Made by a program: the position numbers and the translations under genes. The notes beneath the pieces were generated by a model. That model was not told where the DNA came from, did no database searches, and saw nothing but the letters and a program-made list of their open reading frames with translations. A stretch of 64,000 nucleotides of DNA from Zygnema circumcarinatum SAG 698-1b (taxonomy: Eukaryota > Plantae > Zygnematophyceae), in contig CM074811.1 in NCBI GenBank assembly GCA_037447605.1, positions 496,001 through 560,000 of the forward strand. Direction: 5' to 3'. Below are positions 39,201-60,498 of the stretch, in pieces. Every line of letters starts with the position of its first letter. Position 1 is the stretch's first letter.

Positions 39201-40334
39201 ACCCACAGCCGACTGGGCCACGTGGACCATTCCCAGCCCGCCACGTGTCTAAAAGTCGGACGTGCCGGGTCCAGAGACGCAGCCCTCGCCATCAGAACGG
39301 ATCCAAAACAAATTTGCAGAAAGTGAAACTTGATCGCATCGCAGGAGGCACCCTCGCCTACATTCCGCCCATCCCATTCTCCTCCGAGCAGCAGATCGAT
39401 CCGCAGTGCCAGTAACCAAAATGAAGTTGAAAATGTTCCAACTTCTGACCAAAGGCAACTCATAACATTCCATAACACAATTTTCAGCTTATCACATTTC
39501 TCGAAGTTTGAAGGGCGATCATGGTCTGGTGCCCAACCAATGGCCGCGATCGACTGTCTACATAACGCCGCAATGCCAACGAGAAACCAAAGCCGACGAC
39601 GAACCATCCATCTATTTATCCATCCATACATCCATCCATTCACCCCCCAAGCGTGCCTTTATGCATCCCCTGTGCATGCCATTGCCATGGCGCGTCCACT
39701 CCCTCATCATGCCATGCATGTGCAGGTACGCGCACTATTGTAGAGCCATACTAAGTTTGATCGCCTCCTCCTCTGATGGTGAGAAGGAAGGAGGAGAAGC
39801 GTCAAGCGCCCCATGGGCCACTCTCGCATGCGACAAAAGTCGCATGCCTATTCGCACTCGCTGCGGCCGCGGTCGGTCGGTGTTTTGTCGTCTCACAGGC
39901 CCCTGATCCGCCGCTTCAAGGCATGCCTGCATGCAAAAGGAGACCGTTAGGAGCAGGTAGATGAAGGAAGGTGAATCTTGAAAGAAAGGGGGCAAACGAA
40001 TGGAGGAGATTTGAAGTAAAGCATGAAAAGCATCCGTTATTTGAATGCAACAAATGACCTCTCTAGGAATTTGAAGCAATAAGATAACTCTTAGTGTCTT
40101 GTGAAGAGGATTATAACGGATCTCTCGTAAAGCAAAAGCTGACTTCCCATCAGATAGCCTAATGATAACCAAACAGTTATTGAACGCAACGCATCTTCAA
40201 GTTCAACAATTGCGCAGAGTTGAATCCAAACATTCCAAAATGATCAGAAGAAAGACAACACTACGCAGCAAAAGCCATAGGAGGTGTCAAGGGACAAGGC
40301 GAACAGTACCAGCATCGGTAACTGGAGGAGGGGC

Positions 40335-43300
40335 TTAAAAAGAACGGCTCGGAGGGGGACGTCGAGGAGGGGGTCGACGGCTGGGAGGAGGCTTACGTGG
40401 AGGGGGCCTTTTTGAAGGGGGCCGAGGACGGGGAGGAGGTGGACGCGGAGGAGGGGATCGTGAAGCTGCAGAAATGCAGGGCATTGTGTGAGTTTCCGTT
40501 CATAATTAAAGGCGAACTCACTTCTTTCATAACTTACATATTCTAATCGAAACACGTCCTTATAAACGTTTTGGGAAGATGCAGAACGAAATGAAGACCA
40601 GTCAAAATGAAAATAAACTTACTTCAAGACTTCTGACATCGTATTTCATCATCTATGTGCATCTCAGGCTATATGCATCTCCACGAAAAATCAGATTCCG
40701 GTGTCATTTCTCGGGCTACGCAATTTTCTCTTTGAAAAGCAGAAAAGTCAAACTCGCAAGTTATCTAGCTACTGCAACTGTCGACAAGATATGTTGTAGC
40801 TATTGGGTCGAGAAAATTTTGAAGCTAAAACCATGATATCGGAGCAGCACTCGATATATCCTAATAAACTCTGCACCATTTTCTGAAAGGGCTTGCAGAG
40901 TTCACCAAGTTTTCTTACAGTGTGCTTCTGGAAGGTCGAGAATTGAATCTCTTCTATTTGCGGCATCAAATGGATCGCATTCAGTGTGCTCTAACAACAA
41001 CGACAGTGTAAACTTGATAGAAATGCGATAGTTTCCACAACCTATGCCACTCTTTTCTTCACCTTTCTTACGAGTATTTACAAGCAGCAATTTGCAACTG
41101 ACCACACGTGCCCAATGCCAGCGCATATCCCGCGTCGCATGTGCACGTGGCCGTGTCGTAACCGCACGTGCCGCGGCTGCCGCACGCTCCCTCGGGAGAA
41201 CCGCTCTGGCAGAAGGCCGCGCACACTTCCGGAGGTCTCTGATTTGGAGCTGCGCCACATCCTGTGATGTTGCGATAAATGCAGTTGTTGTCATAGGAAT
41301 TGGAGGGGGAGCAATAAGGTTGCCCGTATATTGTAATGTTGATTGGCCCGGAGAAGTAGTTGTCTTGGATCTCCAAGTCATTAGGGGTACCGATCGCAAG
41401 TGCAATGGAGCCAGTCAACTTGTTATTATTCAAGTACCTGATGACATTAAGGGTGGCGCGTTAGAGAGGGAGAGAGAGAGAGGGGAACAGTAAACCAAAA
41501 CCCGTTCAAGTCTTCCTTGTGTTACATCAAATGAAAACTTTCGTTTGTGCTCTCTGCAAAGTCTCTGCCTCCATCTTCACGACCCTACGCAACCTTCAGC
41601 CTTCAAACACTGAAACCCTAAATCTCTAAGCCTTTCCCTACATCCATTCCACCTACAATCCCATAAACCCTGCACTCACTAAATCCCCATGGCTTCTAAA
41701 CCCTTTTACTCATATGCCCCTAAACCCCTTGATTTTTAAGACTTAAAACCTAAAACCCTCAACCCTAGCCCTAATCCGTAAATCCCTAATTCGAAAATCT
41801 GGAATCTCTCGCATGCAAAACTGCGCGTTGTTGTGCATCAAAAAAGCCCGCGCCGTGACAGAAGTGACCATAAATATGAAATCAACTAAAAACTCACGCA
41901 AGCGTGAAATAAATGTGAAGTTTGAGAGGTACGAATGTTTTTTGCCGAGAACCAAAAAATTTCAAATTGCAAATACAGGGTTATCGAAGCAGCGGTGCTT
42001 ACAGGTAATGTAGTTGGGTGAGTTTAGAGATGAAGCCGGACACTCTCCCCTCCAGTTTGTTGCTGCTCAGAACCCTACAGACACACATAACGACGAAAAA
42101 ATTGTCGAAAAGGATATGGCTGGTTCTGGACTGAACACGAGTAAATCAGGTATTCAACTCTTCGTTCTATAGTCGAATTCTCAAACGCAGTCTCACAAAA
42201 AGGCAGTGCGAGATTAAAATTTACTCGCATATAACACCAAAAGTGAAAACAACCACGCGGCGAAGATTTGCCACGCAATCATGGATACACAACATCGAAA
42301 GTTGCTGCTTTGAAAGGTGCAATAAGTCACTACACTTATAAATTTAGAATAAAAGCCATGAAAATTCATATAAATCATACAAATTGGCGAGGTTCCCAAT
42401 AGAGTTTTGGATGACGCCCCTCAGAATCAGTAAAGCGTCTACATCTGATGTATCATCCATCGATCGTCACAAAAGGCTTCACCAGCTCAGCAGATGTTTT
42501 GCATCAAAAATAGAAAAAAAAAATTGAAACTCGGTTGAATGACTGCTCAAATGCAAACCGAAGCTCACGGGCGGAAGGCCTCTTGCAGGCCAACACCGGC
42601 AGGAGGAGGTGCAAGAGTACGGTACGGCGGCATCTGGATTAGAGGAGTGGCGCAAGGAAGAATCTGAAGCGTATCTGGCATTGTGACGTGATTGGTTGGA
42701 AGATTCTCGACACGTCAGTGCGATCTGATACAGGGCGAGGGGCTTTCAGCTTCTTAAATACTTACAAGGAATACAGATTCGTAAGTTTGCCGATAGAGTC
42801 CGGGATAGACCCCGTTAGGGAATTAGAAGCCAAGGTTCTGCCAAAAAGAAAAAAGAATCGGCACTGAATAAACATGCTGCCACGACTAGCATTTCTATCA
42901 CTGGCATTCCTTTGTATGGAAGTTCTATCACTTTCATTTCAGATTTAAGGGAAAAAATGCTTACAATGCGTAAAGATTCACAAGGTTGCCGATAGTATCC
43001 GGAATAGACCCCGTTAGAGAATTTTCATAAAACGATCTGCCAAAAATAAAAAAAAGGCATAGAATAAACATGCTGGCACGACTGGCATTTCTGTCACTGG
43101 AATTTCTCTGTCTGACATTTCTGTCACTTTCATTTCAGATTTATAGGCAAAAATACTTACAATGCTTGTAGATTCGCAAGGTTGCCGATAGAATCCGGGA
43201 TAGACCCCGTAAGGGAATTAGCACCCAAGTCTCTGCCGGAAAAAAAAAAAAAAAGGCACTGAATAAACATGCTACAACGAGAGCATTTCTCTGTATAGCA

Positions 43301-44360
43301 ATTCTATCACGTTTGTTTCAGATTTATGGAGAAAAATACTTACAAAAAATTAACATTCGTAAGGTTGCCGATAGAATCCGGGATAGACCCCGTTAGGGAA
43401 TTTTGATAAAACGATCTGCCAAAAATAAGAAAAAGGGCACTGAATAGACATGCTGCCACAACTAGCATTTCTATCACTGGCATTCCTCTGCCTGACGTTT
43501 CTGTCACTTTCGTTTCAGATTTTTGGGGAAAAATACTTACAATGAGTAAAGATTTGCAAGGTTGCCGATAGAATCCGGAATAGACCCCGTTAGGAAATTA
43601 GCACCCAAGTCTCTGCCAAAAATAAAAAAAATAGGCACTGAATAAGCATGCTGCCACGACTAGCATTTCTATCACTTTCATTTCGGATTTATGAGGAAAA
43701 ACACTTACAATGATTGCAGATTCGCAAGGTTGCCGATGGCAGGTGAAATGCTTCCTTTAACACCATAGAAACTTAAACCTCTGCAAAAAGCAGGTTAGCA
43801 GTGAAAGCGTCAAAAGAAAAAAGGGCCGCGGGCAGTAGAAGGACTGCTCCAGATGGCCCTTAGTAGTCCCTTTTTGAGGAGGCTTCTTCACAGGATCTTC
43901 CTCGCAGCTTCAGGCTGCAGTTCAGCAGCTATGGAATCTGCGGAGCCTCCAACATCACAAGCGGTGTTCAGTCAAAGTGTGGCTCACAGCTCAGTAACGC
44001 GCCCGGTTGCGTCGCATGTGATCCCACTCCATTTGCTGCAGTCGGTTTCACTCGCTGTCCAGGATGTGAGGTTTTGTACGTTGGTGAGTGCCGCTTTGAC
44101 AGCGAGAAGAGCGTCCCCTGCGCCCAAGCGCGAGCAGATGCAGGATTGGATTGAGGCCGCGGTCCGCTTCAAAAAGCACAAACAGAGGCCCCGCCGCGGG
44201 CAGGCCGCCTCTCCCCTTCTTCCATAGAGGGCGGGCGGGCGGGCCGCGGCGGCTCACTGTCTCGCGGGTCGATGGCCTGAGCGGCGGCTTCGCGCGGGGC
44301 GGCGGCGGCGGCAAAGAGGAGGAGCGCCGCCGCGAGAGAGAGAGACCGCGCGCGCGCCAT
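40335..44360 (-). CDS. Secreted LRR-EGF-like-Pro/Arg-rich protein, paralogue A (7 single-LRR exons)
   Basis: Exons: signal 44360-44258; LRRNT 44117-43988 (RDALLAVKAAL..LTSW..DCSKWSGITCDATGRVTEL); 72-nt LRR exons at 43780-43709, 43612-43541, 43415-43344, 43232-43161, 43036-42965, 42837-42766 and 42074-42003; LRR + Cys cap + EGF-like exon 41437-41103 (CGSRGTCGYDTATCTCDAGYALALGTC); possible exon 40990-40919; final exon 40465-40335 (SRSPPPRPPPPRPRPP..RSF*). All junctions are GT-AG and in frame. Confidence 0.85.
42766..43780 (-). repeat. Tandem exon-intron array, 6 units of about 170-200 bp, each with one 72-nt LRR exon
   Basis: Each unit contains CAG|A..TCCCTAACGGGGTCTATCCCGGATTCTATCGGCAACCTT..TT|GTAAG on the minus strand, encoding xLxxNSLTGSIPDSIGNLxNLxxL. 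Confidence 0.92.
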
Positions 44361-44520
44361 CGCGGCCAAGCGCCCGCCGGAGACACCAGGGGACGGGACG
44401 CGGGGGCGGCCAGAGGCGAGGAGAGGGCGGGGAGGGGCGGGAGGGAGGGGCCTGCGGGGAGGGAGGGCGCCTTCCTCCGCCATGGCTTGGGACAGCGACG
44501 GACGACGGCTCGCTGGCGTG

Positions 44521-45802: not shown

Positions 45803-48800
45803 TGCCCTGTCGGCGTCTGCCGCCACTCGCCCGCCCTCCCTTTCGGACGCCTCCGCTCGACATCGTCGGGCAGTTCAGTTAGGCCGATGCGGGGAGTTGT
45901 CTCGCGCTGCTCGCGCTCTTCGACCCTTTACGCCCGCCCCGGCCAACAACGACACTTTGGATCGCCTTCGGACTCTCCATCCGGATGCGCCTGCGGATGT
46001 CCCTTCCTTCATCGACACTTTTGAGCCTGTCGACTCGTTTGTGCTTGATCGTGCCGCTTTCATTCGGGCGCTTACTCGCTCCCCTCATTTGTCTGCAGGG
46101 GGGCCTTCGGGCATGGTTTATGAGTTGCTTCGTGATGTGTTTTCTCCAGACACCGGGGATAGTGGGTTTGGTTTGCTTTTTCAGATTGCTTGTGTCATAT
46201 CGCGGGGGTGCATTGTTCCTAGATCCGTGAGTGTATTTGTACGTCAGCTCGTTTGCGTTTTACTTTTAAACCTGCAGGGGAGTTCGCCCCATAGCCGTAG
46301 GGAGGTTTTGTATCGCATGGTTGCTCGCGCTATGTGTTTTCAGTTACAGGGGGCCTTTCAGGATCATTTTTCCCCTTACCAGTTTGGTGTGGCGACCCCT
46401 GGGGGCTGCGAGGCCGTAGTTCATGGCATTCGTGCGACGTTGGATCTTCACCCTGATTGGGTTGTTTTGCAGGTTGATGTGACAAACGCTTTTAATACGG
46501 TGGATCGTCATGAGATTTTTCGCGAGTTACGAGAGGCCCCTGCACCGATTGCGTCCCTTTTTCCTTTTGTGCGCACATTTTATTCTCGTTCGAGCCCGCT
46601 CCTTTTTCCTCTTGGCGATGCATCTGGTGGAGTGGCGACCTTGGAGTCTGCGACCGGGACCCGCCAAGGCGACCCTTTAGGAGGTCCTTTGTTCGCTTTG
46701 GCGCACATTCGTGCGCTTCGAGCTTCGGCACAGGCTTTTCCAGGCTGCCTTTTTCCATCAGTGGCCGACGATACTCATATCATTGGCCCTGCTGACCAGG
46801 TCGTTGCCGCGTTTACTGATTTTACTACTCGATTGGCCGCTATGCGTTTGACGGTAAATTTGTCGAAGTGTTTTGCTTGGTCTCCGGTTGGTATCCCTTC
46901 TACCCTTTCGCTCCCTTGTGGTATCCAGACTTGTGCTGATGGAATTGGTATTCGTGTTTTAGGCTGCCCTTTCGGCGTTGCATCTTATGTTGATCGTTTT
47001 GTTGATGATGCTTTGGTTGAGGATACGTCTCAGGTCGATGAGCTTCCACATCTTTCAGATCCTCAGGTGGCTTTTTCTTTGCTTACTCGTTGTTTTGCTT
47101 TGCGTCCGTCATACCTTTTGCGAACTCTCCCTCCTAACCCTGCTTTCCTTGAGTCATTGCAATCTTTCGATGAGCGTTTGTTTTCTGTATGTCATCGCCT
47201 TTTGGGTCCTGGTATTTTCGATCGACCGGAGGGTCCGCTTGCACGTACGCAAGCCTCGCTCCCTATTTCGGCGGGCGGTTTAGGACTCATCCCGACAATT
47301 CGTGTGGCGCCTTCTGCGTTTTTGGGTAGTTGGGCTCTCGTTGCTCCTATTTTGGCTTCGCGTTTTATTGTGGCTGATCGTCCGTTGCTTCAGTCTGTTG
47401 TCGCTCATGTTGATGATGGTGATCTTCCGTTTCAGGTTGCATTGCGTGACGCCCATGGTTTGCTTCCTGCTAGTGCTCAGGCTCGTACGCCCCCGTTTGT
47501 TTCGCTTGCCGTCGAGTCTGTTCCACGTGTCCAGCTCACTTTGACTGATGAGGTTGTTGCTGCTGAGTTCTCTACCCTTATTGCGGCTCTTCCTTCTGAT
47601 GTTGCGCGTGCTCGGCTTCGCTCTTGTGCGGGTCCTGGGGCTGGGGCTTGGTTGGCTGTTACCCCGATATTTTCCACCCTTCGTTTGACCCCAGGCCAGT
47701 TTCAGCTTGCAGCGCGACTTCGTCTCGGGCTCCCCCATCCGCCATTGCAAGGTTCTCCTCTGTTGATGTATTGGGTACATCAAGGTGTTGGTACTTAGTT
47801 CCTAGCATGAATGTTGTCCGGGAGATCAATGTGCTGGTATAGGGACAATGTCATGCATGAACGGTCATGTTTGGTGTAGGACCGAACATGGGGGGTGCCC
47901 GTATCATTAGGGCACTGTACGGCAGGTCTAGGAATAGTTTAGGGTCGTAGGTTTGCGGCTTTGACTTAGATCGAACCAAAGGGGGTGCGCGGAGTGCGCT
48001 TGGACGGATTGGAGCGCGGCCGTACGGACGGCGCGTGAATTGTACGGACGACGCGGAAGTTTGCGGACGCGGAGATTTGGAAGCGCGGGAGGCGGATTTG
48101 CGTGAAGCGACATGATTGGTCGCGACAGCACGCAAAACGCGGCGCATCTCTGAGCGTGACGTGACGCAGGGTTCGGCAATGTCGGTGGAGAACTTGTGAG
48201 ATATTTGGAGTGCGCTGATTGGTCGCAGCGCGAGTGCGGAGTACGGAGCGCAAAGCGGCTGAGTGCGCCGCGAGTGCGCGGAGTACTGACGAGCGAATCT
48301 AATTGGTCGCGGCGCGAGCGCGAAACGCAGAGGGAGAAGTTGCGGCGCGGAAACGACAAGGGAATATCGGCGGCGAATCGAGACACGCCATGTGGACCAC
48401 TTGCGGAGTGGGTTCGCTGGCTCGATTGTACGGCAGAATGGTCGGCGGGCGAAGAATGCTACTGAGGGCTGGCGAAGCGGCGGAACTGTACGGATGGACA
48501 AGAACTAGGTCGGCGCCATCGTAGGTTTACGAGGCGCACTAGCTGGTCGCTAATTCTGAGTGCGCCCACTCAGCGGAATGCAAGGGCCGGCCGTGACGTG
48601 ACAATTGTGTCACGTCACATCGCCATGGTTGCTTAAGAGAGAGCAAGCTTGGCTCTCTCACTACTCACTCACTAACTCAAGCTCAACTCTCTCTGAATGT
48701 AATGCTGCTCTGTCGTTGGTTGTTTAGGAAGAGCAAGCAGAGGTTGAGGCGTAGAGGAGTCCGGCCTTGTGTATGAAGGTCGTGAGAACTAGCTCTCATC

Positions 48801-50422: not shown

Positions 50423-51509
50423 TTATTCGTACGAAAGGTAGCCTCTCTGACGCGAGCGCCATTTGCAACGCCAAAACCTAAAATTGCGATCGACAACCGT
50501 ACGTTCGTACAGGCTGTTCAATTTCAACGGTCGTATGGTTGTTCTAAAAGTGTTCTAAAACTCTGAAACGTTTGGATATTAGAACATTCGAAGACTGAAA
50601 TTTAAAGCTCCACCATTCCTTTGTACGGACTTTTTGCCATTCCTGGTCCCGAGCAGGCTGTGCCGTCCCGGTGCATGCATACATGGATGACGTCATCTTC
50701 ACGTGTTAAAGCCCCGCCTACGTAAACGAACGTGACGTGACGTGACGTGACGTGACAGAACCCCCCTCTCCCCCATTCTCCTTCGATCAGATCGACCCAC
50801 AGTGCCAGACACCAAAATGAAGTTGGAAATGTTGCACCTTCTGACCAAAGACAGCTCAAAATTATGCATCCCCTGTGCATGCCACTGCCATGGTGCGTCC
50901 ACTCCCTCATCATGCCATGCATGTGCAGGTACGCACACTACTGTAGAGCCATACTAAGTTTGACCGCCTCCTCCTCCTCTGAAGGTACCAAGAGGGAGGA
51001 GAGGCGTCACGCGCCCCATGGGCCGGTCTCGCATGCGACAAAAGTCGCATGCACTTGTTGAGGCCACGGTTGGTCGGTGTTGTGTCATTGCGCAGGCCCC
51101 GATCCGCCTGCATGCAAAGGAGACCAAGGAGCAGGCCGATGAAGGAAAGTGAATCTTGAAAGAAAGGGGGGAAACGAATGGAGGAGATTTTAAGTAGAAC
51201 ATGAAAAGCATCCGTTATTTGAATGCAACAAATGACCTCTCAGGAATTTGATGCAATAAGATAACTCTTAGTGTCTTGTGAAGAGGATTATAACGGATCT
51301 CTCGTAAAGCAAAAGCTGACTTCCCATCAGATAGCCTAATGATAACAAAAAAGGTATTGACTGCAACGCATCATCCAGTTCAACGATTGTGCAAAGTCGA
51401 ATCCAAACATTCCAAAATGATAAGAAGAAAGACAACACCGCAGCAAAAGCCATAGGAGGTGTCAAGGGACAAGGCGAACAGTACCAGCATCGGTAATTGG
51501 AGGAGGGGC

Positions 51510-54500
51510 TCAGAAAGAACGGCTCGGAGGGGGACGTCGAGGAGGGGGTCGACGGCTGGGAGGAGGCTTACGTGGAGGGGGCCTCCTTGAAGGGGGCCGA
51601 GGACGGGGAGGAGGTGGACGCGGAGGAGGGGATCGTGAAGCTGCAGAAATGCAGGGCATTGTGTGAGTTTCCGTTCATAATTAAAGGCGAACTCACTTCT
51701 TCCATAGCTTACATATTCTAATCGAAACACGTTCTTATAAACGTTCTGGGAGGATGCAAAACGAAATGACGACCCTTCAAATTTAAAGTAAACTTACATC
51801 AAGACTTCTGCCATCATATTTCATCATCTATGTGCATCTCAGGCTATATGCATCCCCACGGAGTCAGGTTCCTGTGTCATTTCTTGGGGGATGCAATTTT
51901 CTCTTTGAAAAGCAGAAAATTCAAACTAGCAGGTTATATAGCTACTGCAATTGTAGACAAGATATGTTGTAGCGTGCACGCGATTGGATTGGGTCGAGAA
52001 AATTATTGAAAGCTAAAACCATGATATCGGAGCAGCACTCGATATATCCTAATAAACTCTGCACCATTTTCTGAAAGGGCTTGCAGAGTTCACCAAGTAG
52101 TACTCGCCATGTTCTTCTAGAAGGTCGATAATTGAATCTCTTCTATTGGCGGCATCACATGCATCGCATTCAGTGTGCTCTAACAACAACGACAGTGTAA
52201 AAGTTGATAGAAATGCGACAGTTTCCACAACCTATGCCACTCTTTACTTTTCCTTTCTTGCGAGTATCTACAAGCAACAGGTTGCAACTCACCACACGTG
52301 CCCGATGCCAGCGCATATCCCGCGTCGCATGTGCACGTGGCCGTGTCGTACCCGCACGTGCCGTGGCCCCCGCACGCTCCCTCGGGAGAACCGCTCTGGC
52401 AGAAGGCCGCGCACTCTTGCGGAGGTCTCTGATATTGAGCTGCGCCACATCCTATGACGTCGCGATAAATGCAGTTGTTGGTATAGTTGAAGTAGCAATA
52501 AGGTTGCCCATATGTTGTAATGTTGATTTGCCCGGAGAAAAAGTTGGCTTCGATCGACAAGTCATTTAGGTTATAGCTCGCAAGAGTTATGGAGCCAGTC
52601 AACTTGTTGTTCTTTAAGTACCTGATGACATTAAGGGTGGCGCGTTAGAGAGAAGGAGGAACTTTCCAACAAAACCTGTTCAAGTCTTCCTTGTGTCACC
52701 GCCACTGGAAACATTCGCTTGTGCTGTCTCCAAAGTCTCGGACTCCATCTTCACGACCCTACGCAACCTTCAGCCTTCAAACACTGCACCCCTAAATCTC
52801 TAAGCCTTTCCCTACATCCATTCTACCTGCAATCCCATAAACCCTGAACCCACTAAACCCGCATAGCTTCTAAACGCTTCAACTCATAATCCCCTAAACC
52901 TCGAGTTTTAAGACCTAAAACCTTCAACCCTAAACCCTAACCCTAATCCTAATCTAGCCCTAACTCTATATCCTAAAAATCTTAACAACGAAATCCAATC
53001 TCTTGCATGCAAAAGTGCGCATTGTTGTGCGTCAAAAAAGCCCGCGCCGTGACAGGAGTGACCAAACATATGAAAGAAGTGACCAAAGCTATGAGATAAC
53101 TTAAAACTCATGCAAGCGCAAAATAAATGTAATAGTTTGAGAGGTACAAATGCTCGGCCGAGAGCAAAAATTCAAACTGCAAATACAGCGTTATCGACTC
53201 AGCGGTGCTTACAGTCGTTCCAGTCGGGTGAGTTTAGTGATGAAGCCGGATACTCTCCCCTCCAGTTTGTTGCTGCTCAGGTCCCTACAGACATACATAA
53301 CGACAAAAATCCCAACGAAAAGGACTGAACAGATATAAATCAGGTATTCAACTCCACGTTCTATAGTCGAATTCTCAAACGCAGTCTCACAAAAAGGCAG
53401 GGCGCGATTAAAATTTTACTCGCATATAAGCACCAAAAATAACTACGCGGCAAAGTTTTTCCACGCACTCACGAATACACAACATCGAAACTTGCTGCTT
53501 TGCGAGATGCAATAAGTCACTACACTCATGATTTCAGGAAAATAGCCATACAAATTCATGCAAATCATACAATTTCGCGAGGTTCCCAATAGAGTTCGGG
53601 ATAACGCCCCTCAGAATAAGTAAAGCGTCTCATGTGAATTAGCATCCAACGATCTTCATAAAAAGCTTCACGAGCTTGGCGGATATCTTGCGGCAAAAGA
53701 AAAACTAACAAAATGAAACTCAGTTGAATGATTGCTCAAATGCAAACCGAAGCTCGAAGTTGCCACGTGCCAAACAACCAAGCAGAAGTTTCATGGCATC
53801 TCCTCCTCCATGGAGGGAGGAGGGGACGGACGGCTTTGCGCAACATGACATGGAGGAGAAGATGCCGACATGGAACACGCGCAATTGGAATGACATGGGT
53901 CCTCTCAAGGGCGGGGCGCCGCCCGGCGGAAGGCCGCTCGCAGACCGGCACAGGTAGGAGGAAGTACGAGAGTACGGTAAGGCAGCGTACGGATCGGAGT
54001 GGCGCAGGGAAGAATCTGAAGCGTATCTGACACTGCGACGTGATTGGCTGGAAGATTCTCGACACGTCAGTAAGATCTGATACGGAGCGAGGGGCTTTCA
54101 GCTTTTTAAATACTTACAAGGCTTGCAGATTCGCAAGGTTGCCGATAGAATCCGGGATAGAGCCCATGAGGGAATTATTACGCAAGTCTCTGCCAAAAAA
54201 AAAAAATAGGAACTAAATAAACATACTGCCACGACTAGCATTACTTTCACTGGCATTCCTCTGTTTGACATTTCTATCACTTGAATTTCAAATTTATGGG
54301 GAAAAATACTCACAATCTTTCCAGATTCGCAAGGTTGCCAATAGAATCCGGGATAGACCCCGTTAGGGAGTTATCACGCAAGTATCTGCCAAAAATAAAA
54401 AAAAAGCACTGAATGAACATGCTGACACGACAAGCACTTCTATCACTGGCATTCCTCTGTCTGGCAGTTCCATCACCTTCATTTCAGATTTGTGGGGAAA

Positions 54501-57500
54501 AATACTTACAAACTTCCCAGATTCGAAAGGTTGCCGATAGAATCCGGGATAGACCCCGTAAGAGAAGTAGAACCCAAGGATCTGCCAAAAAATAATAAAA
54601 AAGGCACTAAATAAATATGCTGCCACGACTAGCACTTCTAGCACTGTCATTCCTTTGTCTGGCATTTCTATCACTTTCATTTGAAATGAAATGAAATGAA
54701 ATACTTACAAGTAGTTCAGATTCGCAAGGTTGCCGATAGAATCCGGAATAGACCCAGTTAGGGAATTAGAACCCAAGGATCTGCCAAAAATAATAAAAAA
54801 GGCACTAAATAAATATGCTGCCACGACTAGCACTTCTAGCACTGTCATTCCTTTGTCTGGCATTTCTATCACTTTCATTTGAAATGAAATGAAATGAAAT
54901 ACTTACAAGTAGTTCAGATTCGCAAGGTTGCCGATAGAATCCGGAATAGACCCAGTTAGGGAATTAGAACCCAAGGATCTGCCAAAAATTTAAAAAAATA
55001 GGCACTGCATAAACATGCTGCCACAACTTGCTTTTTTGTCACTGGCATTCCACTGTCGGGCATTTCTATCACTTTCATTTCAAATTTAAGGGGAAAATTA
55101 CTCACAAGTATCGCAGATTCGCAAGGTTGCCAATAGAATCCGGAATAGAACCCGTCAGGGAATTAGAATCTAACCATCTGCAAAAAAAAAACAAAAAAGG
55201 CACTGAATAAACTTGCTGCCACGACTAGCATTTCTCTCACTGGCATTCCTCTGTCTGACATTTCTTTCACTTTCATTTCAGATTTATACGGAAAAATACT
55301 TACAAGTACAACAGATTCGCAAGGTTGCCGATAGAATCCGGGATAGACCCCGTTAGGGAATTGTGATACAAGATTCTGCCAAAAATAAAATAAAAGGCCC
55401 CTGAATAAACAATCTGCCACGACTAGGATTTCTATCACTGGCATTACTCTGTATGGCATTTCTATCACTTTCATTTAAGACTCATGGGGAAAAATACTTA
55501 CAAGTACTGCAGATTCGCAAGGTTGCCGATAGAATCCGGGATAGACCCCGTGAGGGAATTGTTATACAAGTATCTGCAAAAAATAAAATAAAAGGCGCCT
55601 GAATAAACATTCTGCCACGACAAGCATTTCTATCACTGGCATTACTCTGTATGGCATTTCTATCACTTTAATTTAAGATTCATGGGGAAAACTACTTACA
55701 CGTTGATCAGATTCGCAAGGTTGCCGATAGAATCCGGGATAGACCCCGTTAGGGAATTTGAATACAAGTATCTGCAAAAAATAAAATAAAAGGCCAATGA
55801 TTAAACATTCTGCCACGACTAGCATTTCTATCACTGGCATTTCTCTGTATGGCATTTCTATCACTTTAATTTAAGATTCATGGGGAAAACTACTTACACG
55901 TTGATCAGATTCGCAAGGTTGCCGATAGAATCCGGGATAGACCCCGTTAGGGAATTTTGATACAACCATCTGCCAAATATAAAATAAAAGGCCCCTGCAT
56001 AAACATTCTGCCACGACTAGCATTTCTATCACTGGCGTTACTCTGTATGTTATTTCTATCACTTTCATTTCAGATTTATGGGGAAAAATACTTACAACAA
56101 TCGCAGATTTACAAGGTTGCCGATAGAATCCGGAATTGACCCCGTTAGGGAATTTGAATACAAGTATCTGCAAAGAATAAAATAAAAGGCCCCTGAATAA
56201 ACATTCTGCCACGACTAGGATTTCTATCACTGGCATTTCTCTGTATGGCATTTCTATCACTTTCATTTCAGATTTATGGGGAAAAATACTTACAAGTTAT
56301 GCAGATTCGCAAGGTTGCCGATAGAATCCGGGATAGACCCTGTTAGGGAATTAACACCCAAGTCTCTGCCAAAAATGGAAAAAAAAAAATAAGGCACTCA
56401 ATAATATGCTGCCACAACTAGCATTTCTATCACTGGCATTACTCTGTATGGCATATCTATCACTTTCATTTCAGATTTATGGGGAAAAATACTTACAAGT
56501 ACAACACATTCGCAAGGTTGCCGATAGAATCCGGGATAGACCCCGTTAGGGAATTGTGATACAATATTCTGCCAAAAATAAAATAAAAGGCCCCTGAATA
56601 AACAGTCTGCCACGACTAGGATTTCTATCACTGGCATTACTCTGTATGGCATTTCTATCACTTTCATTTCAGATTTATGGGGAAAAATACTTACAAGTTG
56701 ATCAGATTCGCAAGGTTGCCGATAGAATCCGGGATAGACCCCGTTAGGGAATTTTGATACAACCATCTGCCAAAAATAAAATAAAAGGCCCCTGAATAAA
56801 CATTCTGCCACGACTAGCATTTCTATCACTGGCATTACTCTGTATGCGATTTCTATCACTTTCATTTCAGATTTATGGGGAAAAATACTTACAAGAACTG
56901 CAGATTCGCAAGGTTGCCGATAGAATCCGGGATAGACCCCGTTAGGGAATTTGAATACAAGTATCTGCAAAAAATAAAGTAAAAGGCCCCTGAATAAACA
57001 TTCTGCCACGACTAGCATTTCTATCACTGGCATTACTCTGTATGCGGTTTCTATCACTTTCATTTCAGATTTATGGGGAAAAATACTTACAAGTACTGCA
57101 GATTAGCAAGGTTGCCGATAGAATCCGGGATAGACCCCGTGAGGGAATTGTTATAAAAGTATCTGCAAAAAATAAAATAAAAGGCCCCTGAATAAACATT
57201 CTGCCACGACTAGCATTTCTATCACTGGCATTACTCTGTATGGCATTTCTATCACTTTCATTTAAGATTCATGGGGAAAACTACTTACAATTCTCTCAGT
57301 TTCGCAAGGTTGCCGATAGAATCCGGGATAGACCCCGTTAGGGAATTTTGATACAACCATCTGCCAAATATAAAATAAAAGGCCCCTGAATAAACATTCT
57401 GCCACGACTAGCATTTCTATCACTGGCATTACTCTGTATGGCATTTCTTTCACTTTCATTTCAGATTTATGGGGAAAAATACTTACAATGTTTCCAGATT

Positions 57501-58388
57501 CGCAAGGTTGCCGATAGAATCTGGGATAGACCCAGAAAGTGAATTATTACCCAAGTCTCTGCCAAAAAAAAAATAAATAAATAAGGCACTCAATAATATG
57601 CTGCCACAACTAGCATTTCTATCACTGACATTACTCTGTATGGCATTTCTATCACTTTCATTTAAGATTCATGGGGAAAAATACTTACAATGATTGAAGA
57701 TTCGCAAGGTTGCCGATAGAATCCGTGATTGACCCTGTTAGGGAATTCCCCTTCAAGTCTCTGCCAAAAACGAGAAAAAAAAATAAGGTACCGACTATGG
57801 GCAGGTTAGCAGTGAGAACGTCAGAAGGAAAAAGGGCCACGGGCAGTAGAAGAACTGCTCCGGGCGGCCCTGTTAGCCGAAGAAAAGTGTCGTTTTTCTC
57901 TGAGGAGACTTCTGACTGCAGACCCTCCTGGCAGCCTCGGGCTGCAGTTCAGCAGCTTTGGAATCCGCGGAGCCCTCCAACATCACAAGCGGTGTTCAGT
58001 CAAAGTGTGGCTTACAGCTTAGTAACGCGCCCCCTTGCGTCGCATGAGATCCCACTCCAGTTGCTGCAGTCGGGGTTACTCGTTTTCCAGGAGGTGAGCC
58101 ATTGTGCGTTGTTGAATGCCGCTTTGACAGCGAGAAGAGCGTCCCCTGCGCCCAAGCGCGAGCAGATGCAGGATTGGATTGAGGCCGCGGTACGCTTCAA
58201 AAAGCACAAACAGAGGCCCCGCCGCGGGCAGGCCGCCTCTCCCCTTCTTCCATAGAGGGCGGGCGGGCGGGCCGCGGCGGCTCACTGTCTCGCGGGTCGA
58301 TGGCCTTAGCGGCGGCCTCGCGTGGGGAGGCGGCGGCGGCAAAGAGGAGGAGCGCCGCCGCGAGAGAGAGAGACCGCGCGCGCGCCAT
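51510..58388 (-). CDS. Secreted LRR-EGF-like-Pro/Arg-rich protein, paralogue B (20 single-LRR exons)
   Basis: Exons: signal 58388-58286; LRRNT 58145-58016; nineteen 72-nt LRR exons starting at 57760, 57558, 57360, 57162, 56964, 56766, 56568, 56365, 56167, 55969, 55771, 55573, 55375, 55177, 54978, 54780, 54581, 54385 and 54189; LRR exon 53284-53213; LRR/Cys/EGF exon 52621-52293; possible GC-donor exon 52179-52108; Pro/Arg exon 51640-51510. Every LRR exon is stop-free in the LRR frame. Confidence 0.88.
54118..57760 (-). repeat. Tandem exon-intron array, 19 units of about 198 bp (72-nt LRR exon + about 126-nt intron)
   Basis: Exon starts are spaced 196-204 bp apart. Each unit has a CAG acceptor and a GTAAG/GTGAG donor, and the intron sequences are nearly identical. 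Confidence 0.95.
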
Positions 58389-58964: not shown

Positions 58965-59395
58965 ATTGGAACCAACCAATGAATTGCCAACCATTCGATT
59001 GTTGTGGAATGAACCATGAGACCATGAGATTGGAACGAACCAACCATCCAACCCTTGAATTGCCAACCATTCATTTGATGTGGCATGAGCCGTAAGACCA
59101 TGGCATTGGAACCAACCAACCAACCAGCCAACCAATGAATTACCAACCATTCGATTGTTGTGGTATGAACCATGAGACCATGAGATTGGAACGAACCAAC
59201 CATCCAACCCTTGAATTGCCAACCATTCATTTGATGTGGCATGAGTCGTAAGACCATGGCATTGGAACCAACCAACCAACCAGCCAACCAATGAATTACC
59301 AACCATTCAATTGATGTGGTATGAACCATGAGACCTTGAGATTGGAACCAACCAACCAACCAGTCAACCAATGAATTGCCAACCATTCATTTCAT
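58965..59395. repeat. Minisatellite, about 78-bp unit (alternating 76/80 bp), about 5.5 copies, rich in CCAA
   Basis: The anchor TGAATT(G/A)CCAACCATTC occurs at 58980, 59056, 59136, 59212, 59292 and 59372. Confidence 0.9.
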
Positions 59396-60498
59396 GGTTG
59401 TCTGGGTCGCAACAAAGTAATCATCGCAACCATTGGCAACGGTCGGCCATTGAGTCCAATTCTTGGCACCCACTAGCAATGGGTTGTTGGTTCAGCTGTT
59501 GGCTCAGTTGAGAATTTGGTGACTATTGAAGAAAGCCAACGGAAATGTTGACCGGCGAGCCAGTTAACGCACAGATGTTAGTTCCATGCGATGTTTTTGT
59601 CCCATCCTTCAACGCAGCGCCCATTCAGTTACACATGTAGCGCACAGTTTTCCGGTAACCGACTAGGACCAGGACCATTTTGATCAAATCAGCATCACCA
59701 ACAGTCATTCGCCACGTGTACCAACTTGACACGTGCCACATCCTCATTGAGGGATGCTCGGCCGTTGCTTAAAGAGCCCCCTCCCTGCCTGCTTCCCTCT
59801 CTTTCTTCAGCAATTCCCGCCACCCCTTTGGGAATTGCATAGCTGCAAACTTCAGTTTTCAGTTTGCAGTTTACAATTTGACGTGGTATGTCTTGCTGGT
59901 TTCTTGGAAAACTCATGCTCTCACTCTCCCTCGCAAAGTGGGAAGACCTGTCGGTGACATATACAACGACATGGGGCCATAAAGCAACATGTTTTGAATT
60001 CATGAAAGGAGAGAGGGAGGGAGAGAGAGATGAGGAGCGAGAGAGAGAGAACGGGGGGGAATGGGTGGGCGGGAGAGAGAGGGAGACAGAGAGAGAGAGA
60101 GAGACAGAACTCTTCACCACAATTTGGAACAAGACGAAGATCGAAGTCTTCTTCATTTCCATGCAACTTCAATCCAGCCAATGATAAGCCTCCAATCGAA
60201 CAGCACATGAAGGTCCCCTCCCTATGTCTCATGCATCACAGGCTCGCGGTAGGTCACTGGTGGTCTCATGGCTGCGATGTCAAGTCAGTTATGGACATGC
60301 TTCATGCTCTATACAATAATCCCTTGCTTTAGTACACGCATGTACATGGATGGCCCTTCGCCCTGCATCCTACCCAACGTGAGACGACGAAGCTGCAAAG
60401 CCTAACTCTTCCAATGCAAAACTTCCCAACCAGTCCTTTTTTCATTCTCAGCCAAAAGTAACTCTAAAAGACCCTTTTTTTTCTCTCCTTATTCACTA

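Follow-up and report, generated by a model that had tools for sequence, protein, structure and literature searches.

Introduction

In the ERECTA and SERK genes, each leucine-rich repeat (LRR) is encoded by an exon of 72 nt. The LRR-kinase genes of rice are built of such 72-nt one-LRR exons, with a phase-2 intron placed in the first Leu codon of the xxLxLxx segment (PMC3050792). Here we describe a 64,000-nt stretch of the genome of the zygnematophyte Zygnema circumcarinatum SAG 698-1b (assembly GCA_037447605.1, contig CM074811.1, positions 496,001 to 560,000; hereafter "the window"), the reverse strand of which carries two related LRR genes, here called A and B; gene A contains an uninterrupted array of 19 one-LRR exons. 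The intron position, the exon length and the LRRNT_2 cap are those of land-plant LRR receptor genes; however, whereas the LRR exons of land-plant genes are old and their introns unrelated, the Zygnema units are recent and their introns are 86-94% identical to one another, and the transmembrane (TM) segment and kinase of the land-plant LRR receptor kinases are absent from the Zygnema gene model. We consider it probable that gene A is a germline gene for a secreted LRR protein of plant type, in which the ligand-binding domain has grown by tandem duplication of units and its exposed faces are under positive selection.

Comparable arrays are on record in more distant organisms. The LRR genes of Tetrahymena contain arrays of 90-bp phase-2 exons with uniform introns; in common with Zygnema, they show exon-plus-intron units repeated in tandem at the nucleotide level, a junction residue split in phase 2, uniform intron lengths and recent clonal expansions, but their repeat has 30 residues, the exons number tens of thousands genome-wide and there is an association with a non-long-terminal-repeat (non-LTR) retrotransposon (PMC6564038). 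Brown-algal ROCO genes have arrays of 72-bp phase-2 exons with shuffling, positive selection on the concave face and alternative splicing, and the authors of that work voiced the same speculation on adaptive-like immunity (PMC3341825; PMC11378527) that was made in a preliminary description of the Zygnema DNA, drawn up from the sequence alone. Symmetric one-LRR exons, tandem units that can be aligned as DNA and an excess of non-synonymous change at the faces are common to the ROCO and Zygnema arrays. ROCO proteins, however, are LRR-ROC-COR GTPases of the cytosol and have another type of LRR, whereas the Zygnema protein is predicted to be secreted; no ROC-COR GTPase module is found in its gene model, which has an EGF-like module and a Pro/Arg tail instead. 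Unlike in Zygnema, the ROCO exon consensus of Zambounis et al. 2012 (PMC3341825) has the entire xxLxLxx strand within one exon. LRR relics in introns and on the reverse strand are documented for the ROCO genes, as is alternative splicing. Given that the two lineages are unrelated, their likeness reflects convergence.

Among plant proteins, those of the Cf type contain runs of near-identical LRRs in which variation is focused on the solvent-exposed xxLxLxx positions, and PGIP is a secreted LRR protein without TM segment or kinase that shows positive selection on its concave face. Like Cf-2/Cf-5 and PGIP, the Zygnema protein has LRRs of plant type and is predicted to be extracellular. The LRR domains of Cf genes are intronless and the proteins have a TM anchor, whereas in Zygnema an intron has been copied with each repeat and the C-terminus consists of the EGF-like module and Pro/Arg tail. 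In the lamprey, the germline gene for a variable lymphocyte receptor (VLR) is incomplete, and hundreds of donor cassettes that flank it are used in the somatic assembly of the receptor. VLRs have in common with the Zygnema protein an LRR scaffold and a hypervariable, Tyr-rich concave face; in Zygnema, by contrast, the germline gene is complete and there are no flanking cassettes in the window. Recombination as a source of new repeats has a precedent in tomato Cf-2/Cf-5, where it has given LRR copy numbers from 25 to 38 (PMC10515242).

A Tandem Array of One-LRR Exons

The 19 array exons (54118-57760, reverse strand) are each exactly 72 nt long and all open in the LRR frame; they are flanked by a pyrimidine tract with AG and by GTAAGT (GTGAGT in two cases), and their consensus is a 24-residue plant-type repeat, LxxLxLxxNxLxGxIPxxxGxL. 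The 18 introns, of 124-131 nt, are all in phase 2, an exon beginning with the third base of the split codon, which is Leu (TT/A) or, twice, Val (GT/A). Exon and intron together make a unit of 198 bp, and Tandem Repeats Finder (TRF) reports a single array at 54108-57770 with a period of 198, 18.5 copies and 87% matches. In-frame stops are present in every array intron and in none of the 19 exons, and units 15 and 16 are nearly identical.

The preliminary description had given 19 consecutive open 72-nt phase-2 exons at 54118-57760, and the coordinates, frames and splice sites all check out; its nearly invariant exon core corresponds to 11 invariant and 5 near-invariant columns of 23, and its list of faces and recurring half-modules is correct throughout. 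That the intron divides each face was presented there as a special architecture, a view that we do not share: the same layout is conserved in plant LRR-kinase genes (PMC3050792), and a face assembled across a splice junction is therefore the normal layout of a plant LRR gene and not a special device.

One further open frame of 234 aa (56401-57102, reverse strand) runs across exons and introns; it is in the wrong frame, and we rejected it as a gene, since it is a by-product of the periodicity (198 = 66 x 3). The array introns (for example 57688-57559, reverse strand; about 126 nt) also have an internal direct repeat of about 15 nt. One copy of this is missing from the first intron of paralogue B, which measures 96 nt, so an internal duplication or deletion has changed the length of the unit intron by about 30 nt.

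Hypervariable Faces on a Conserved Scaffold

The hypervariable codons of the array exons are codons 1, 3, 4, 22 and 23, which are the x positions of xxLxLxx. Diversity at these face codons is 0.58 overall and 0.43-0.77 per site, save for one third position at 0.11, against 0.13-0.14 in the introns and 0.07 in the exon core; when 15 intron columns were drawn at random 100,000 times, no draw was as diverse as the faces, and a Mann-Whitney test gives p=2e-9. By the Nei-Gojobori method, the non-synonymous diversity (pN) of the faces is 0.60, while the other 18 codons have a pN of 0.025 and a synonymous diversity (pS) of 0.184, a pN/pS of about 0.14. These 18 scaffold codons are under purifying selection, which is evidence that the array exons are translated. 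After Jukes-Cantor correction, face pN rises to 1.20, compared with 0.21 at synonymous sites and 0.15 in the introns, so that the faces change about 6-8 times faster than silent sites. The excess is again about 4-fold between genes A and B (face 0.56, intron 0.14-0.17).

A mutational hot spot at the splice junctions was considered and is out, given that the hypervariable codons are interspersed with invariant Leu and Asn codons and that the adjoining intron ends are conserved. The synonymous positions of these Leu and Asn codons, amid the face codons, are unsaturated (0.20 and 0.11, respectively), that is, no more diverged than the introns, and the faces are therefore not ancient relics.

The pattern reported at first sight is thus real and statistically strong, and its evolutionary part, diversifying selection together with recombination among units, holds. 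Diversifying selection on concave-face codons is borne out by a pN of 0.60 against a pS of 0.18 in the other codons and 0.14 in the introns; variation is indeed concentrated at the exon ends, with most face sites far above the core, and the face codons do vary more than the introns (0.58 against 0.14). With regard to composition, Tyr contributes 23 of the 95 face residues, followed by Ser, Asn, Gln, Gly, Asp and Arg, which agrees with the proposed richness in Tyr, Asn, Asp and Arg but not with that in Trp and His, both of which are minor. All 18 faces do differ from each other, as had been counted, but this is expected from random pairing of the observed halves (P=0.80).

Duplication and Exchange Among the Units

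Paralogue B, with its much shorter array (Table 1), provides a reference for the history of gene A. The flanks of the two genes are 82-91% identical in nucleotides, introns included, and LRR exon 20 of gene A has its match in paralogue B at 42074-42003. In a tree of all array introns from both genes, introns 2-6 and 8-12 of gene A form a clade (support 99/96, tip lengths 0-0.03), and the remaining introns of gene A are intermingled with those of paralogue B; from this tree it follows that the ancestral array had about 6-8 units and that, following the duplication of the gene, about 10 more were added in a burst. In the young clade, the introns have a diversity of 0.059, against 0.63 at codons 22-23 and 0.37 at codons 1, 3 and 4, and the corrected ratio of face to intron is about 23.

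The array units are mosaics. Exchange of segments among them, proposed in the preliminary description, is confirmed by the pairwise-homoplasy (PHI) test (p<0.0005). Within an exon, the variable 5' end goes with the variable 3' end more often than chance would give (P=0.0008), whereas the pairings of face halves across introns show no such association; most exchange breakpoints therefore lie in introns, and half-faces have been re-paired over evolutionary time. Reassortment of half-faces thus stands in so far as it runs through breakpoints in introns, but the two halves of any one exon stay together. Array exon 1 of gene A (57689-57760) indicates a breakpoint of another kind, having an array-type 5' half and the original 3' half relative to paralogue B: it differs from the first LRR exon of B (43709-43780) at 20 of 57 scaffold sites, and the two translations place the differences in the 5' half, with the 3' end identical. 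Conversion, or a crossover, has therefore also had a breakpoint inside an exon core. The duplication history, the mosaicism and the selection pattern are shown by these comparisons.

On this basis, the domain would have been lengthened by repeated tandem duplication of the 198-bp unit of LRR exon and intron, probably by way of unequal crossing-over, starting from an array of about 6-8 units common to gene A and its neighbour and with some 10 units added in the recent burst. With breakpoints mostly in introns, whole exons would be copied and the face halves on either side of an intron re-paired; under positive selection, the five xxLxLxx positions exposed to solvent would then change at several times the rate of neutral sites. 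The outcome would be a long, Tyr-rich concave binding surface with fast germline evolution, comparable to that of PGIP or Cf-type plant proteins.

The Predicted Protein and Its Relatives

Gene A is best read, from its splice sites and frame, as a 24-exon gene for one predicted secreted protein of 710 aa. All 23 introns of the join are GT-AG, and the 710-aa open reading frame (ORF) has no internal stops; the predicted product would consist of a signal peptide, an LRRNT cap, 21 LRRs, a Cys-rich/EGF-like module and a Pro/Arg tail. The exon limits were taken from splice sites and frame, because conservation between A and B (about 85%, introns included) is too even for that purpose, and the signal peptide was read from the sequence of the gene model and not from a predictor. 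Matches of the 329-nt exon (52293..52621) to the Pfam families EGF_2 and EGF_Teneurin are weak, with E about 0.006-0.008, below the curated cut-offs. There is no TM segment in frame after the LRR domain, the ORF closing with the Pro/Arg tail, and tblastn searches with LRR-EGF-TM-kinase relatives from Mesotaenium found no kinase in the window. A weak and indirect hint of transcription comes from several sequencing runs of unidentified type, in which the share of words sampled from the locus is 0.14-0.20; an exon-only transcript would hold 0.20-0.21, and DNA runs hold about 0.5.

The gene has the cap, the 24-residue repeat and the phase-2 intron placement of the LRRNT_2-capped class of plant extracellular LRR proteins. 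Consistent with this, a profile built from the array exons without exon 14 matched in the PDB exclusively ectodomains of plant LRR receptor kinases and receptor-like proteins, together with LRX2; the best match was At4g26540 (2.4e-25), and the others included FLS2, GSO1, MIK2, SERKs, HSL1, TMM, BAK1, ERL1 and LRX2. The predicted protein would be extracellular and might act in defence or in sensing of the wall.

Relatives of the C-terminal exon are few: 22 weak ones among 1.84 billion representatives, with 44% as the best identity. We looked up the sources of 16 of these 22, and those with a species name are Mesotaenium and Closterium; one of the 16 comes from the transcriptome of an amoeba that feeds on such algae. 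A protein homology search with the ORF of the LRRNT exon gave no matches. Two of the proteins found, P0024 and P0025, have the same order of LRR, EGF-like module and basic Pro-rich tail as gene A, and their sources, short Logan contigs almost filled by the ORF, are probably transcript assemblies.

The locus of one Closterium relative, in Closterium sp. Naga37s-1 (L001, 2392-11162), is a gene for LRRs, an EGF-like module, a legume lectin and a papain peptidase, the LRR exons of which were located by a regular-expression scan and aligned with MAFFT. At least 10 such exons, of 72 nt and in phase 2, stand in tandem and share the register of the Zygnema array, in units of about 800-1,275 bp; the introns between them (about 730-1,200 nt) are 87-97% identical, with a distance of 0.09, and the diversity of the faces is 0.56. 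The same pattern has thus arisen in another genus, and there the C-terminus is a different one, of lectin plus peptidase.

Alternative Explanations

Two observations weigh against growth by duplication with selection on the faces as a full account. For point mutation with selection and nothing else, a ratio of about 23, as in the young clade, is high; probably conversion has also made introns and cores more alike, or face segments have come in from other arrays. Furthermore, the protein libraries searched do not contain the product of gene A itself, and the C-terminal exon found nothing in them above 44% identity. The first of these leads to concerted evolution coupled with selection that preserves diversity, which we regard as possible but rather unlikely as the principal explanation, and which is a variant of the favoured one and not its opposite: the faces would be older than their frames, conversion would homogenise introns and cores while selection spares the faces, and face segments may have been imported from other LRR arrays. 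The high corrected ratio would fit such a history, as would the 2-3 base differences per face codon between units with almost identical introns, the clear mosaicism and the converted 5' half of array exon 1. However, the Leu and Asn synonymous sites amid the faces are as little diverged as the introns, a state that conversion would keep up only with tracts of 1-3 bases; the clades of the intron tree are structured, unlike the outcome of uniform homogenisation, and the same 4-fold face excess is seen between the paralogues.

Whether the array generates diversity within the organism, by exon skipping or alternative splicing in the manner of Dscam or ROCO genes or by somatic recombination in the manner of VLRs, is a question raised by its layout: each of the 19 exons is symmetric, with phase 2 at both ends, and the splice sites are nearly the same throughout, so that any skip keeps the frame, the units are alike enough to recombine, and 72-bp LRR exons of Ectocarpus ROCO genes are alternatively spliced (PMC11378527). 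We nevertheless hold such a generator to be very improbable, as strong consensus splice sites at every exon favour constitutive splicing, the germline gene is complete, and a search of both strands of the window found no LRR cassettes outside genes A and B that could serve as silent donors; germline evolution accounts for the whole pattern, including its recurrence in the Closterium gene with a different C-terminus. For these reasons the antibody- or VLR-like combinatorial system envisaged in the preliminary description is both unsupported and unneeded, the 710-aa germline ORF being complete. A related reading, in which reassortment of half-faces is the selected function of retaining the introns, and exon skipping might add a repertoire of isoforms within the organism, has the 19-unit array, the 6-unit neighbour and the Closterium gene as leads in its support, and we judge it improbable. 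To the suggestion that the exons are mere resemblances in a satellite-like array, a dead gene or an assembly artefact we give almost no credence. The perfect 198-bp tandem repeat, which TRF reports as satellite-like, and the almost identical units 15 and 16 are what such an origin would produce, but all 19 exons are open against in-frame stops in every intron, pN/pS in the scaffold is about 0.14 with a core less diverse than the introns, and the 24-exon ORF is clean. Moreover, about half of the words sampled from the locus are present in six DNA runs, which come from three studies, and P0024 and P0025 have the same domain order.

Significance

Growth of an LRR domain by germline duplication under positive selection, the explanation that we favour, is a process already documented elsewhere, with exons duplicated in tandem, unequal exchange and an xxLxLxx segment under diversifying selection, and the locus presents no new mechanism. 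Nor is the system undescribed in kind, as had been supposed, since close analogues have been published for brown algae and Tetrahymena and recombination-driven LRR copy number for Cf-2/Cf-5. For zygnematophytes, no account of such arrays came up in our literature search, in which the genome papers of Zygnema and Spirogyra were included. What the locus offers is a clean and quantifiable case of a plant-type extracellular LRR domain growing and gaining new faces in the algal sister lineage of land plants. Its layers are dated, the core being old and the burst young, and the paralogue next to it serves as reference. The most interesting detail of the locus is the ratio of about 23 in the young clade, which suggests homogenisation of the frame or import of face segments beside point mutation. 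A genome-wide census of such arrays could inform the early evolution of cell-surface recognition in plants.

Features of the Locus

Table 1. Exons of gene A, subdivisions of its array and the paralogous gene, in window positions.
Feature	Positions	Strand	Evidence or remarks
Exon 1: ATG at 58388, putative signal peptide	58286..58388	-	Donor GTGAGC; hydrophobic Ala/Leu-rich N-terminus
Exon 2: LRRNT_2 cap	58016..58145	-	Pfam PF08263, E=6.3e-9; ends in phase 2, donor GTAAGC
Array: 19 one-LRR exons, 18 introns	54118..57760	-	Splice sites, frame, TRF
Array exon 1 (one LRR, 72 nt)	57760-57689	-	
Array exon 2	57558-57487	-	
Array exon 3	57360-57289	-	
Array exon 4	57162-57091	-	
Array exon 5	56964-56893	-	
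Array exon 6	56766-56695	-	
Array exon 7	56568-56497	-	
Array exon 8	56365-56294	-	
Array exon 9	56167-56096	-	
Array exon 10	55969-55898	-	
Array exon 11	55771-55700	-	
Array exon 12	55573-55502	-	
Array exon 13	55375-55304	-	
Array exon 14	55177-55106	-	
Array exon 15	54978-54907	-	
Array exon 16	54780-54709	-	
Array exon 17	54581-54510	-	
Array exon 18	54385-54314	-	
Array exon 19	54189-54118	-	
Young block: units 2-12 (unit 7 intron of older type)	55502..57558	-	Introns form one clade
LRR exon 20: 72 nt, phase 2, diverged from array units	53213..53284	-	AG / GTAAGC, open in frame
329-nt exon: last LRR, C-terminal cap, Cys-rich EGF-like module	52293..52621	-	Splice sites and frame
Last exon: Pro/Arg-rich tail and stop	51510..51640	-	Stop position same in paralogue B
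Paralogue B: same gene with only 6 array-type LRR exons (43780-42766)	39373..44507	-	TRF period 196

The 833-nt intron that follows array exon 19 contains, at 53560-53640 (reverse strand), a decayed half-LRR piece with no open in-phase 72-nt exon, probably what is left of a dead array unit. Nearby, at 53940-53761, gene A has an insertion of about 160 nt that is absent from paralogue B. The region of the Pro/Arg-tail exon (51468-51707, reverse strand) is about 97-99% identical between A and B, against about 85% around it, which would indicate strong constraint or recent conversion; this region is GC-rich and open in all three frames.

Between the two LRR paralogues, on the forward strand at 45897-47798, lies a 633-aa ORF with a reverse-transcriptase domain (RVT_1, E=5e-15) that resembles those of long interspersed nuclear elements (LINE-like); no link between it and the array is shown, unlike the non-LTR association in Tetrahymena. 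Just upstream of gene A, and outside the region duplicated in paralogue B, there is a tandem repeat of 80/156 nt at 58972-59396.

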